Shown here in pieces: positions 45,559 through 53,193 of a DNA stretch of 64,000 nucleotides; within the stretch, counting starts at the first letter, position 1; the number at the start of each line of letters is the position of its first letter. The position numbers and the translations under genes were made by a program. This stretch comes from Octopus sinensis (Eukaryota), in the NCBI RefSeq assembly GCF_006345805.1, contig NC_043009.1, positions 18,786,001-18,850,000 on the forward strand. Reading direction: 5' to 3'. Under the pieces are notes generated by a model. That model worked only from the letters and a program-made list of their open reading frames with translations. It was not told the DNA's origin and did not search any database.

Positions 45559-45638
45559 CACATATGATTTTCTTAAGCTTTACTGGCATTTGATTACAAC
45601 CATACACTTCAGCGCACTTTATATAATCACTTTTGGCA
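45559..45638 (-). CDS. Exon (80 nt, phase 2-1) of unannotated Cys-module protein
   Basis: Acceptor TCTTTTGACAG, donor GTAAGT; open frame AKSDYIKCAEVYGCNQMPVKLKKIIC; same size, phases and Cys spacing as 53114-53193. Confidence 0.8.
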
Positions 45639-46319
45639 CTGTCAAAAGATTTGAGAAAAAAAAATGGCAATTATTTTCACTTTCACAATATAAAAGTTAC
45701 AAAATTTCCTTTTTCAATATCTTGAGTATGGTGTGAATTACAGCAGCAATGTCTCAATTGATACAGTTTTACTCCTTACAGTGTTAATTCACTTGAGAAA
45801 TGCATAGCTATCACATCTCATTTAATCCTCTTAAAAACATAGTGCTAATACATCTTCACCTAATCTCTTACAATTAGCAGCCATATCTTCTTCCAGCTAT
45901 ATCTTGCCAGCTTTAAAAATAAGATTGAGTGCATAATGCAATCTTCAATATATTATGCCAGGAAAAAATGCAAAATGGTCATGGTTAGAACCCATCTATA
46001 CAATGAAAATTCAACACAGGAAGAACAGAAAAACATTTGTCAAAACCAAGCATGAAATACATTTGATGGTGACAAATCTGTACAAAAACACAACAAATAT
46101 CGAGAAAGTAGGAACATCCTCTCCTATTTCAAATTCATCAACAGACAACACAAAGCATCAAAACCTTACTTAATCACACAGCAAATCAGAACAAAAGGCA
46201 TCCCAGAAGTTACCAAAAAAAAAAGTATTAATTTAGTCTTTAGGATTTATATACAGCTAACTTCATTATTACTATCTCTACAGTCAAATTATATGTTCTT
46301 TTTGAAATTAAGATAAATA

Positions 46320-47520
46320 CAAGGTGCATTCCAGAAGTTTAGAGACTTTTTTTTAGGCAAGTCATTTATTTCTGTTCTAGATTACTGTAATTTTAGTACA
46401 TCATTACTAATAAGCTGACCTGCTAGCTTTTGTTTATTTGAACGCAACACCGCTTATCACAGCTGAATGCAGTTGGGACATGAAGATGATTTAGAAGCTC
46501 ACTATTCAATAAAGTTTTGTGTTAAACTGGGCAACAATGCAACAGAAATTTATGAAATGCTCCAGACTGCTTGTGGATTAACTTGTATGAGCCGAGTATC
46601 TGTTTTTTTTTTTTTTTGCTGGCAAGAGGTTCAACGATGGGAAAAAGGAGGTGAAAGACAATGAGAGGTGTGAGAGGGAAAGAGATGTCAGCATATCAGA
46701 GCTGGTTGAGAAAGTTCAGTTGGTGTAGCAACAGTGCACAGAACTCTCCATGACAATCTGAACTTGTGCAAAGTTTGTTCTCAGGATGCTCATTGATGAA
46801 CAGAAGGAAAGACAAATTGGTGACAGCAGGGAGATGGTTGAGCTCATTACCTCCAATCCAAGAGTACTTGAGTCTCTGGTGACCTATGTTGAAAGATAGG
46901 TTTACTGTTATGATCCAGAGTGCCCAATGGAAGCATCCTGTCTCCCCCAGATCCAAGAAGGCCAGGCAAATCAAGTCCACTAGGAAACTCATGACGATCC
47001 CCTCTTTTGATAGTAAGAGCATCATTTACAGCCACTGGGTTCCCTCTGACCAGATCGTTGACAAAGAGTACTTTGTGGAGGTTTTAAGGGAGTTCAGGAA
47101 AAGATTTCATTGCAAAAGGCCAGAACTCTTCCATTCAGATCAGTGACACCTGCACCAAGACAATGCACCAGTCCACACAATTCCATCTTGATAATCAACT
47201 ACTTGACAGAGATGGACATCAAAACTGTTCCTAACCCTCTCTACAGTCCTGACCTTAGTCCCTGTAAATTTTGGTTCTTCTCCAAGCTGAAGGAGAACCT
47301 CAGGAGCAGCCATTTTGAAGACATTGAGAAGATAAAGGAGGCTGTGACAAGGATCCTGGACACCTTCACTTTGGAAGGCTTCTATAGAACCTTCATGATG
47401 TGACCAGAGTGCCACAAGTGCATTGTCAGAGGATCCTGCTTTGAATGAAATAAGACTTTTGTATCTCTTTGAAATTAATGTCTCTCCTAAAAAGTATCAA
47501 AACTTCTGGAATGCATATCA
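46320..47520 (+). mobile_element. Full-length degenerate mariner (about 1.2 kb)
   Basis: TIRs ...GCATTCCAGAAGTTT / AAACTTCTGGAATGC...; IKFCVKLG, YDPE-like, YSPDLSPCKFWFFSKLKE; many stops. Confidence 0.88.
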
Positions 47521-48670
47521 CAAAGTTTGTTTCTTTGCATCATTTTCTCTCTTTACCACCACTAAGAATGTGTTATTTCATATATTCATCATAACTTGTA
47601 ATTAAGATCTATCATTTATAATATACATGCCACAATGGGCTTTATTAAAACAGTTCCCATCTTATCTTAAATAAAGGATTCATTTCCCCCCAAAAGACAT
47701 TTTTGAAATCAACATACTTGAATAATTCAATATTACTTAAGAGTTTTTAAAATGCAGTAGAAGAGGTTTTGTACCTGTATTTGTACTATCTAGAAAAGTA
47801 CTCTTCCAAAAATGTTCTTTTACTCATGGTCACTGATGGTACCAGTTTAGAGCAGGCCTATTACTTGGGCTCCTATGTAAAATTTAATCTTTACAATGTA
47901 CATTTGCCATTCATGCTACTTTGTAATTTTATTTTCACAGAAATCACATTTTGCTTGGAATGTTTCCAGGACTAACCTAATTTGTCTTTATATAGAGAAC
48001 TTAGCAGTCAGTGAGGTACCTGGAAGCAGTCCTACAAGTAGCAGAGATCCTTTTGCTGATTTTCCTGTTTTGGATCTGATTTGCTCAGAGCTCCGAGGCT
48101 ACTTTTGGGTAGAAAACTACAATACCACAAAGAGCTTTTCCTATCTTAATCCCCAAAGTGAGCAGTTTTTTTAACAAAGATGTAGAGACATATTAGCTGA
48201 ATTTGGATGACCCAGAAGCACTGTATTTTGCACTCCTCACTAAATGAATGTCGGAGGTTTTGAATCTCTATAGAAATATTTTCTATGAATTACTCACATT
48301 GCTTGAAATTTCTCCAACATTGCTTGTAATCAGTGCAGTGTCTGACCCCAGTTTTCTAAGACTTAAAGTGGAATTTCTTGATAGGCAACAAGATGGAAAA
48401 TTTGGGCATAAGTAGATGATGTGTCAAAAATCTTGAAGAATCCTCAACAGGAGAATTGCTATTACATGATTTTACAAGTTGTAAAAGATGTTACAAGCTT
48501 TCATGTTATTCTTTTTATTTAGTGTAATTTTGTGATTAAGTCAAAAAGTAATACTGAATTCAATTTATTACAAAAAAATATGAATTATTACCAACATAAA
48601 GCTTTTTCCTTCCACATGATTTTCAGACCAATTCTTAATCAGGCTGATAAAAACTACTACTGGTACTGCT

Positions 48671-48975
48671 ATTCTTTTACTTGTTTCAGTCATTTGACTG
48701 TGGCCATGCTGGAGCACCGCCTTTAGTCGAGCAAATCGACCCCAGGACTTATTCTTTTTAAGCCTAGTACTTATTCTATCGGTCTCTTTTGCCAAACCGA
48801 TAAGTCACAGGGACGCAAACACACCAGCATCGGTTGTCAAGCGATATTGTTGGAACAAACACAGACACACAAACATATACATACACAATCACATATACAT
48901 ATATACATACACATATACACACATATATATATATATATATATATACATACACATATAAAAATATACACACACACA
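48671..48975 (-). mobile_element. SINE 3' half (same family as 13868)
   Basis: Direct homology to 13868-14110; the head is replaced by an RTE remnant. Confidence 0.85.
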
Positions 48976-48984
48976 CACACATAT

Positions 48985-51154: not shown

Positions 51155-51380
51155 AATCCTTTGACTATCACAGGTATTACGTTCCAAAAACCCCCGCGAT
51201 AGGGGAAAATCTGTGAAGTAGAAACAGTACTGTACTGTATATTTTTTATAATTATTTTTATAATTTGTATATATTTAATTTATCATAAATGCAAAACAAC
51301 ACCATAGAGGAATCGACATAAGCTTAGATAAGAAACTGCAACAGGTGAACTGCAATATGGCAAGGGATTATGGTACAGAA
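51155..51380. mobile_element. Possible Tigger/pogo-type MITE remnant
   Basis: TACGTTCCAAAAACCCCCGCGATAGGGGAAAATC resembles Tigger-type ends; recalled from memory, not searched. Confidence 0.3.
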
Positions 51381-51647
51381 TGAAAAATTTTGAACACAGA
51401 CATTTAAAACAGATAAATAAACTTAGGAGTAATTCAAAGGTATGTATTGCTGATTAATAACAACAACAATTATAATAATTTCCAATTTTAGGACTCAGAG
51501 GTCGGGTGAGAAATTTGTCAACTTGCATTCGATCAATTTAGTTACCTATTAATCTAAAACTTTAACTAATGATGAGATTTATAGATATATATGATGATGA
51601 TATAACTGAAAAAAGTCAATAATATTTAATGAACATTTGTAACTTAC

Positions 51648-51717
51648 GCGCATTTGTCCTTCATATTGGTGGCTTTCATTGTTCTGTCTATCTCACTGCT
51701 GCATGCAAAGCCACAAT
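51648..51717 (-). CDS. Exon (70 nt, phase 1-2) of unannotated Cys-module protein
   Basis: Acceptor TTCCTCATTTGTCATGCCAG, donor GTAAGT; (D)CGFACSSEIDRTMKATNMKDKC(A); phases fit both neighbouring exons. Confidence 0.72.
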
Positions 51718-53113
51718 CTGGCATGACAAATGAGGAACATATGGATTATATAAAGAGGTAACAAAACTTTCTAATAGAGAAGAAATAATATACACAAAAC
51801 ATAGTAATAAAAGAAGATTTTAAGTGTTTATACACACCTAGGCATACTAGCATTTGCATACAGTAGCAGACAGGTAAGACACATGGGAGATTTCTGTATT
51901 TCAAACCTGCCCAACTAAATTATGCACACTAATGTTATGGCTGTCCATCAAATTCAAGGATGACCATCTACATTAATCATGCTTATTTTGATGACTGCAT
52001 ATCTCAATCCATCTTCTCTCTCAAATATGGATCTTTTGATTACATATCACTTATTAAGCATTAGCAACAGAGAACATCTATGCCACACCTACTGTATGCC
52101 CTTGCAAGTTAAAAACTAAAGAAGCAGTAGTATTTATTGTCACACACATGCAGGAAATCCTAACCACCACAATGGTAACCATCCTGGTCAGCCAAGATTC
52201 ATGATCCACACTGCAAGAGATACCTGCATGGTGAAGCTTTAAAGTAGTGTTGGAAGCATACATTTCCGAATATAACTATCTCTGCCATGAAGGAGATAAA
52301 TTTAGCTGCAAGGGTGACCCAGGACAAATGGTGCCACTTCCAGTTTCAAGAAACTACCAAAAATCCATCATGCCGGAAACTGATTGAAAGCTAAAACTAC
52401 ACTTTGTTTATCTCTGAGTTTACACCCTTTGAATTTCTGAGCTTAACCATAAGAGGACAGCAAGGCAGTGTAGATAAGTTACTGTCCCATAACTACAAAG
52501 TTCTTATTCATTACTCTCTTTGACATATGTCTTCATAAGAACTAAGAGACCGTTATTCACAAAATGATCTTAAAGTGCACTCATTCACTATTTGCATGTG
52601 AATATTTCAGTGACTTCAGGCATCATTGCTAGATACTCACTGACCCTATATTGGTAACATCTGTTTATTTAACAGGCCTTACTTTTTGCCCTTCTGGTTT
52701 TCTAACAATTCTTCTCCCCAGGTTAATCTGGAGGAGGTGCCAGTTTAGTTACCAGCAGATATAGCAACCATAATAAAGGTTGTAATAAATTACTTGTTAC
52801 CAGTAGAACTCAAAGTTACATGGCACACGATCATATACACATGTGTCCTGCTAAACAGACTGCAGAGCCTTCTGGACTTCAACAGCTATATTCAGGCCAC
52901 TCTATAGTACTATATTCATGCCATTCAAGAGTGATATTTTGCTTGCAGTGTCAGTTTCAAGTTCTTTGAATATGTAACACCAGGGCTGATTGGATATTGA
53001 TGGGTAGCTCTAATCACGAAAAGTCAAGTAATTAACTTACACTGTACAACACTACAAAATGTCTAGGAGGAGAATGACTCAAAAATTGTTAAGAACTGCG
53101 TAATATCACTTAC

Positions 53114-53193
53114 CGCAAGGTTTTAAATTCATCTTCTCCTTGCTCACAGTACAGGACTGTTCAGATGCACACTTCAATATTGTTTCATACCCC
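53114..53193 (-). CDS. Exon (80 nt, phase 2-1) of unannotated Cys-module protein
   Basis: Acceptor CTCTATTATAG, donor GTAAGT; GYETILKCASEQSCTVSKEKMNLKPC. Confidence 0.78.

Follow-up and report, generated by a model that had tools for sequence, protein, structure and literature searches.

The 3′ end of an unnamed octopod gene encoding a cysteine-rich, probably glycosylphosphatidylinositol-anchored surface protein

Four short minus-strand exons in a stretch of 64,000 nucleotides (nt) from Octopus sinensis (contig NC_043009.1, positions 18,786,001 to 18,850,000; hereafter the window) very probably form the 3′ end of a genuine gene, whose full product would comprise a signal peptide, five modules and a membrane-anchoring C-terminal signal. 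The window holds the second half of module 4, the whole of module 5 and the tail, that is, only the last 1.5 modules, because the 5′ part of the gene appears to fall in an assembly gap. We conclude that the locus encodes a real, unnamed cysteine-rich surface protein that is probably anchored by glycosylphosphatidylinositol (GPI), and that a role as a toxin or pheromone is not supported.

Three of the exons (A1, B1 and A2; Table 1) had been proposed in a first-pass annotation, and when the sequence is read directly their lengths of 80, 70 and 80 nt, their donors, acceptors and phases, and the spliced peptide are exactly as claimed. At either end, a split codon contributes one nucleotide to the A exons and two to B1, giving compatible phases and an in-frame spliced peptide. 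Cysteines occur at codons 8, 14 and 26 in both A1 and A2, again as had been described. No DNA alignment exists between these two exons, and their likeness is therefore one of protein scaffold rather than of a recent DNA repeat.

The fourth exon corrects the earlier annotation, which had suggested an acceptor before position 41943 for the last exon. The tail of an Octopus bimaculoides protein (A0A0L8HQE3) instead matches another candidate, at 41474-41365, which is therefore the true terminal exon; the acceptor before 41943 and the other downstream candidates were rejected on this ground. The phase of the terminal exon fits that of A2, and its product is ETSGNDSSFFGSKILLTITIVFTILFAFITTNVIIA, followed by the stop codon. 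Throughout the four exons the frame is open, the splice sites are canonical, the phases are compatible and every cysteine is kept. Downstream of the stop codon, and still within a CpG-depleted domain described below, there are poly(A) signals at 41274, 40870 and 40209.

That this multi-exon gene is real, as first proposed, is established by O. bimaculoides and Argonauta hians, whose homologues share its exon structure and keep the cysteine pattern. An exhaustive HMMER search of 1.84 billion (1.84e9) representative proteins, with the 76-residue spliced peptide as the query, returned UniRef entry A0A0L8HQE3, a 73-residue fragment from O. bimaculoides (E = 1.9e-6), and GAB1601774.1, a 310-residue protein from A. 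hians (E = 1.5e-4). A third match was disregarded as a low-complexity repeat protein. The first entry carries the automatic name “Transmembrane protein” and the second is called “uncharacterized protein LOC115232232, partial”, after an O. sinensis locus. The gene had been described as hidden, which holds in that tracks based on open reading frames (ORFs) miss it, but these two relatives were already in public databases.

The O. bimaculoides fragment consists of MQATLENKC, TAKSAYVQCAKKFGCNQMPIKLKKIIC and VSPPVNGSSFFGSKILLTIIIVFTILFAFITTNVIMA, corresponding to the last part of a B exon, then an A exon and the tail. It is 72% identical to the window protein over 74 aligned columns (BLASTP E = 3e-35) that cover A2 and the terminal exon together with the last part of B1, and the two tails are nearly identical. 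Against the C-terminus of the Argonauta protein the identity is 31% (BLASTP E = 6e-14) with every cysteine aligned. The window and Argonauta proteins both carry the motifs N-L-K-P-C-x-C and K-C-x-x-x-Y-G-C, and the family-wide forms of these are N-[LM]-x-P-C-x-C and K-C-x2-[KV]-[YF]-G-C. Identity between Octopus and Argonauta is 31-35% for the six-cysteine protein versus 67% for the product of a neighbouring gene with PAN domains. The ectodomain diverges faster than the PAN protein while all its cysteines are kept, a behaviour that is typical of recognition proteins and is not proof of such a role.

The apparent restriction of the family to octopods rests on this one 76-residue HMMER query, which missed even the paralogues described below at E<=0.001, and more distant relatives may therefore exist. 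A word-index homology search with the same peptide gave no match, the index evidently lacking the O. bimaculoides entry and an O. sinensis orthologue. When a chimeric query made of the Argonauta protein, the window protein and the O. bimaculoides fragment was used in the same way, the Argonauta protein itself was the sole match. A literature search by the accessions and by LOC115232232 found no papers on the family.

The complete architecture is seen in Argonauta, whose locus we fetched and for which we rebuilt the exact spliced structure of the GAB1601774.1 gene. Its 12 exons measure 109, 58, 68, 61, 92, 37, 125, 52, 89, 70, 77 and 95 nt. Past exon 1, the exons begin in strict alternation with two nucleotides of a split codon or with one, and the donor is gtaagt at 9 of the 11 introns and gtaact at the other two. 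The N-terminus, MNTFINIFLLLLLTVSSYVAA/K, looks to us like a signal peptide; it precedes five six-cysteine modules, each made of a B exon and an A exon, and the tail SQENSAVLPSGLPIFTVLAAAVTAYFLELH. The first-pass annotation had derived a duplicated two-exon module with the spacing C-x3-C-x16-C-x8-C-x5-C-x11-C. Indeed, Argonauta has five such modules, of which the last shows exactly this spacing, modules 2 and 4 are close variants of it, and modules 1 and 3 follow it more loosely.

The last four exons of the two genes are collinear (89/70/77/95 nt in Argonauta versus 80/70/80/110 nt in the window), with identical phases and the same intron positions except for a one-codon shift at the last junction that leaves the phase unchanged. 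Specifically, A1 is homologous to Argonauta exon 9 (AQETLKKC...NMKPC), the intron lying seven residues before the first cysteine in both. B1 corresponds to exon 10, which encodes (E)CEFACAAELNLINTFNTKEEKC; both are exactly 70 nt long and their phases are equal. A2 is homologous to exon 11. By this alignment A1 is the second half of the penultimate module (module 4), and B1 and A2 are the first and second halves of module 5. The window gene is the positional orthologue of GAB1601774.1 and of O. bimaculoides A0A0L8HQE3.

Eight further exons lie upstream of the A1 equivalent in Argonauta, and the 1.17 kb between A1 and the assembly gap consists of transposon and repeat sequence, in keeping with the earlier suggestion that the missing module exon and the signal peptide are to be sought in the gap. 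Neither reading of the sequence nor hidden Markov models (HMMs) of the exons found a module exon (B0) in 53194-54364, and a scan of the window and of the corresponding locus of an older O. sinensis assembly with exon-type HMMs gave no additional family exons. A CSC-containing open frame at 53649-53560 was considered as B0 and rejected as a GIY-YIG transposon fragment, and a CxCx3C match at 22519-22584 was rejected as a family exon since it sits in a transposon ORF. The possibility that A1 is the first coding exon, entered through the open upstream frame MVAFSF...LLLLLLLYYR, was also dismissed, because the acceptor position at 53194 equals that in Argonauta, where a B exon precedes it.

A chance origin of the A1/A2 pattern was assessed with a script that collects same-strand pairs of AG...GTRAGT segments with equal length and phase, an open frame and at least three cysteines at identical codons. 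The real window contains just two qualifying pairs, A1/A2 and one from the known PAN gene. None arose when both strands were simulated with an order-3 Markov model of the window (n = 150 + 1200; 0 of 1350 simulated windows), and the pattern is therefore not due to chance. Pairs sharing two cysteines arose 7 times across the simulations, and GTAAGT alone is frequent.

On the far side of the gap lie three larger exons of the PAN gene. Its spliced exons in the window are 100% identical to O. sinensis LOC115218683, a protein of 368 residues with four PAN domains, whose first exons lie beyond window position 64000 and whose C-terminus, ...EINGSQNLKEVKER (last exon SQNLKEVKER, then stop), is absent from the window. 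Window positions 64000-54465 are matched at 99.6% in the older O. sinensis assembly, and then the match ends; the last PAN exon lies about 360 nt past that contig end. Since the match stops at the gap and the last PAN exon is found further on, the gap marks a join between two contigs and conceals sequence. The PAN gene is complete in itself and distinct, not the 5′ end of the six-cysteine gene, and joining our exons to it was rejected because its terminal exon falls in the gap and an inverted gene intervenes.

This inverted gene is itself a member of the family. The order on the Argonauta contig is PAN orthologue, inverted paralogue and six-cysteine gene, with the first and last on the same strand about 33 kb apart and the intervening gene, which encodes 320 residues, on the opposite strand. 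The Argonauta paralogue shows the same phases and the same cysteine columns as the six-cysteine gene (its last four exons being 80/76/89/119 nt) and ends in the tail CNAGSRESSFLNNQLGFLFCLLLLFTNSIVSKF before its stop codon. Likewise, the older O. sinensis assembly has the PAN gene followed by an opposite-strand gene for 322 residues. Pfam searches with the 320/322-residue paralogue gave no match at E up to 10. Compared as DNA, the terminal exon in the window and the 3′ end of the O. sinensis paralogue show no match. Because the window exons lie on the PAN strand and lack this DNA match, they belong to a GAB1601774.1-type member, and the gap hides the paralogue too. By synteny, the gap would conceal the last PAN exon, the whole inverted 322-residue paralogue and about eight upstream exons of the six-cysteine gene, the latter presumably encoding the signal peptide, the first three modules and the opening half of the fourth. 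Two paralogues, arranged head to head beside a gene with four PAN domains, make up the family.

Table 1. Exons of the six-cysteine gene and associated features. Positions are those of the window unless a locus is named; slashes mark splice junctions.
Feature	Position	Strand	Description
Exon A1	53193-53114	minus	80 nt; ttatag/G GGG TAT ... TGC G/gtaagt; encodes GYETILKCASEQSCTVSKEKMNLKPC
Exon B1	51717-51648	minus	70 nt; cag/AT TGT ... TGC GC/gtaagt; encodes (D)CGFACSSEIDRTMKATNMKDKC(A)
Exon A2	45638-45559	minus	80 nt; cag/T GCC ... TGT G/gtaagt; encodes AKSDYIKCAEVYGCNQMPVKLKKIIC
Terminal coding exon	41474-41365	minus	110 nt including TAA stop at 41367-41365; acceptor ttttttcacag/AG; encodes (E)TSGNDSSFFGSKILLTITIVFTILFAFITTNVIIA, then stop
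Intron upstream of A1, sequenced part	53194-54364	minus	GIY-YIG-type transposon fragment at ~53880-53560 and ~60-nt tandem repeat at 53900-54364
CpG-depleted domain	~40000-53500		observed/expected 0.0-0.3 versus 0.4-1.1 on both sides; covers the four exons and introns
Scaffold gap	54365-54464		100 N; joins contigs non-adjacent in GCA_006345805.1 (older-assembly locus 30804-41193)
PAN/Apple exons	63110-62877, 60091-59849, 59592-59362	minus	phase 1-1 each, with one PAN/Apple domain per exon; Pfam PAN 30-38 bits
Argonauta inverted paralogue	Argonauta locus 26003-19675	minus	alternating A/B exons of 92, 64, 143, 52, 80, 76, 89 and 119 nt
O. sinensis paralogue, last exon	older-assembly locus 40400-40262	minus	(C)PCFEYCDSGSRLAGFLSQPFFLVFFLLTVYILPIY, then stop; orthologous to the last exon of the Argonauta paralogue

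CpG content offers a separate hint that the region is a transcribed unit. The depletion recorded in Table 1 has a counterpart in the Argonauta orthologue, where the observed/expected ratio is 0.19-0.45 over the 3′ part (about the last six exons; locus 22001-27000) and the depletion ends at the gene end. The adjacent PAN gene is not depleted. Given what is generally known of gene-body methylation in invertebrates, we infer that the depletion reflects historical germline methylation of the 3′ part of the gene, and the comparison suggests that gene-body methylation is conserved for the six-cysteine gene but not for its PAN neighbour. Such a history would fit germline or broad transcription better than expression of a gland-specific toxin.

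Repeats and transposons are found around and within the gene. ORFs of the reverse-transcriptase type found in long interspersed nuclear elements occur at 39403-37574, 37162-35723 and 25155-23281 on the minus strand and at 28234-29190 on the plus strand; the first of these is open over 610 residues and begins just below the CpG-depleted domain. Degenerate reverse-transcriptase fragments (49984-49626) lie inside the 6-kb intron, and a decayed mariner/Tc1-like transposase (…PNPLYSPDLSPCKFWFFSKLKENL…) occupies about 46700-47400 on the plus strand, in the B1-A2 intron and opposite to the gene. GIY-YIG-like (Penelope-type) nuclease motifs (…IPCSCG…, …VIYSC…YIGC…) at 53880-53560, 23220-22168 and 39857-39330, all on the minus strand, produce false CxC/Cx3C matches. 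Tandem copies of a ~60-nt unit that includes ggtggcacgtaaaa.gcacc and translates as repeated …VARKKHHPN… frames are present at 53900-54364 and 32984-35047, and the array at the former position, which abuts the gap, probably caused the contig break. Microsatellite blocks of the TA/TATG/TGTA type at 26000-27700, 29400-30200, 31000-32300 and 4000-4800, with a GC content of 0.12 in 26001-28000, give spurious open frames rich in cysteine, tyrosine and isoleucine. Finally, a frame of 19 residues, CILFYICVCWRRGRKHFLC, is found at 16618-16674 on the plus strand and again at 18374-18430 on the minus strand, about 1.7 kb apart, and this inverted repeat pair may mark transposon ends.

The module resembles no named family, as the first-pass annotation had stated. 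Pfam searches at E up to 10 gave no match for the window protein or the Argonauta protein, and sequence and profile searches of the PDB gave chance-level matches alone (AgamOBP20, 3v2l, E = 0.2; troponin C, E = 0.16). An AlphaFold2 prediction from the single sequence was uninformative, with a predicted local distance difference test score (pLDDT) of 51. A second run, on an alignment of six rows that combined orthologous with paralogous modules, predicted the one complete module (residues 27-76) to be all-helical at a pLDDT of 80-90, with 5 of 5 models in agreement. The predicted helices span residues 25-31, 33-41, 45-62 and 69-72, and the half-module is disordered, as expected. Foldseek comparison with the PDB retrieved at best generic or unrelated helical proteins (E of 2.4 or higher) among the matches listed, 50 of the 70 with E<=10. 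Across the family the spacing of the module is C-x3-C-x10-16-C-x8-C-x5-7-C-x11-14-C.

In 4 of 4 family members a hydrophobic tail ends the protein with no cytoplasmic extension, and inspection together with hydropathy finds small residues (SGNDSS, NGSS, NSA, NAGS or DSGS) and a short spacer before it. The octopus tail, ILLTITIVFTILFAFITTNVIIA, has about 23 hydrophobic residues, enough for a transmembrane helix, whereas the Argonauta hydrophobic run, IFTVLAAAVTAYFLELH, has about 14-17, preceded by N-S-A, and is short for one. The order of small residues, spacer and hydrophobic tail is that of a GPI-attachment signal, and the protein is probably GPI-anchored. A disulfide-rich secreted or surface protein had been suggested earlier, with ligand, toxin and pheromone as examples. 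The signal peptide of the orthologue and the hydrophobic tails agree with the general class, but the tail points to a membrane-tethered protein and so speaks against the free ligand, toxin or pheromone.

Four other explanations were weighed. The same gene could encode a type I protein that retains its C-terminus as a transmembrane anchor, essentially without a cytoplasmic tail. We regard this as unlikely, yet as the most serious of the alternatives: by its length the octopus tail could span a bilayer and the UniProt label of the O. bimaculoides fragment points the same way, but the tail extends to the final residue and lacks any basic stop-transfer or cytoplasmic segment, the shorter Argonauta run following N-S-A is typical of GPI signals, and the paralogues are laid out in the same way, from small residues through a spacer to the tail. 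Considerably less probable is a product released freely as a ligand, toxin or pheromone. The protein is rich in cysteine and lysine, its orthologue has a signal peptide, it diverges quickly (72% identity between two Octopus species), and GPI proteins may be shed; nevertheless, every family member has the hydrophobic membrane-anchoring tail, the CpG-depleted gene body suggests germline or broad rather than gland-specific expression, and the Pfam, PDB and Foldseek searches matched no toxin family. Five tandem modules in about 290 residues also differ from what is known of short toxins and pheromones in cephalopods, which counts against this alternative.

A decaying copy, with exons that look intact at a locus no longer functional in O. 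sinensis, is about as improbable as a secreted product, if not slightly more so. It could account for introns loaded with transposon fragments and for the finding that no O. sinensis database protein carries these exons, and the 5′ part is unseen; yet four open exons with canonical splice sites and compatible phases, all the cysteines, the motifs shared with Argonauta and a tail almost identical to that of O. bimaculoides have been preserved. Least probable by far, and already refuted, is a chance exon-like pattern or a set of exons used as alternative 3′ ends by the PAN gene upstream. GTAAGT is indeed common (18 minus-strand sites in the window), and the PAN exons are also of phase 1-1 and share the C-x5-C-x11-C spacing, but the simulations failed to reproduce the pattern, homologues have the same exon structure, the PAN gene has its own stop codon in an exon within the gap, an oppositely oriented gene separates the two genes in both species, and the module is predicted to be helical and has no PAN match in Pfam.

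Several points weigh against the interpretation of the locus as a genuine gene for a GPI-anchored protein. The 5′ two-thirds of the gene lie outside the window, so that this copy can be read as intact for its 3′ part alone. The word-index search found no spliced product, and six versions of the window protein started at a methionine had no exact match in the collection searched. GPI anchoring is judged from a tail read by eye and by hydropathy, and the length of the octopus tail also suits a transmembrane helix. The structure model is built on six sequences, among them several repeats that are paralogous, and the function proposed is purely inferred.

By homology with Argonauta, the full protein would carry a cleavable signal peptide and five tandem modules of about 45-75 residues, each with six cysteines and encoded by an exon pair of phase 1 to 2 to 1. 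The signal peptide of the orthologue suggests that it enters the secretory pathway. Each module may then fold as a small bundle of helices that three disulfides hold together, and the tail may be exchanged for a GPI anchor near S-G-N-D-S-S, so that five binding modules in a row would be displayed on the outside of the plasma membrane, in a role that might be one of recognition or of a co-receptor. The residues other than cysteine would evolve quickly within this scaffold.

A broader proposal is put forward tentatively, as one we consider possible but would not yet favour: the two-exon, six-cysteine helical module may constitute a new extracellular domain family, found so far in octopods (Octopus and Argonauta) alone, on head-to-head paralogues that are probably GPI-anchored and lie beside the four-PAN gene. 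Fast evolution of its surface outside the cysteines would fit a system of lineage-specific recognition at the cell surface (for example gamete, self/non-self or contact-chemosensory recognition). A small octopod family that matches no Pfam entry, PDB sequence or solved fold is a candidate for such a domain. Recognition functions usually draw on surface proteins that are restricted to a lineage and evolve fast, and few cephalopod examples have been characterised. The case also shows that reading of raw sequence can recover a short-exon gene missed by ORF-based tracks, of which one public annotation holds just a 73-residue fragment, and it flags a scaffold gap in this assembly that swallows a gene in its entirety along with parts of two more.

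In design, though by analogy only, the protein resembles several known systems that combine tandem disulfide-rich modules with a GPI anchor, namely uPAR/Ly6, GFR-alpha/GAS1 and the CC modules of RECK; the tests of membership in uPAR/Ly6 and GDNF/GAS1 failed. uPAR is GPI-anchored and each of its LU domains is encoded by an exon pair, and the likeness extends to the signal peptide, the tandem two-exon disulfide-rich modules and the GPI-type C-terminal signal. However, LU domains are three-finger beta structures with 8-10 cysteines, whereas the window module is predicted to be all-helical with 6. Ly6/uPAR (PF00021) gave no Pfam match at E up to 10, and the CCxxxxCN motif is absent from the window protein.

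GFR-alpha and GAS1, which are GPI-anchored and built of all-helical, disulfide-stapled tandem domains with C-x-C and C-x3-5-C, offer a lead. The GDNF/GAS1 domain differs in having 10 cysteines in about 80-100 residues; PF02351 was not matched in Pfam at E up to 10 or in PDB sequence searches, and neither a GFR-alpha nor a GAS1 chain occurs among the 50 of 70 Foldseek matches listed. RECK has five N-terminal CC modules of about 50 residues, each a four-helix unit with six cysteines, on a GPI-anchored protein. The CC spacing, CC-x8-C-x3-C-...-C-x9-C, does not seem to fit that of the window family, and RECK carries FZ, EGF and Kazal domains that the family lacks. Among the same 50 listed matches no RECK chain was found, the presence of a CC4 entry in the library not having been confirmed. 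For insect odorant-binding proteins (PBP/GOBP) there was no Pfam match, and the weak match to AgamOBP20 noted above is split over separate stretches.

Closer to hand, the PAN protein LOC115218683 is encoded next door on the same strand and is likewise secreted, with phase 1-1 modules and a local C-x5-C-x11-C spacing; it differs in being a separate gene with its own stop codon and in that the six-cysteine module is predicted to be helical, and the six-cysteine peptide did not match PAN/Apple (PF00024) at E up to 10. The octopod relatives GAB1601774.1 and A0A0L8HQE3 and the 320/322-residue paralogue are like the window gene in cysteine spacing, two-exon modules of alternating phase, motifs, tail and site beside the four-PAN gene, a position that the window gene shares across the scaffold gap. 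They differ in exon lengths, by a few codons, and at positions other than cysteine, with identities of 31-35% for Argonauta and 72% for O. bimaculoides. Relatives of this gene were thus already known as uncharacterised database entries, and what is new is a type of module without a name or a domain model in an otherwise familiar architecture.

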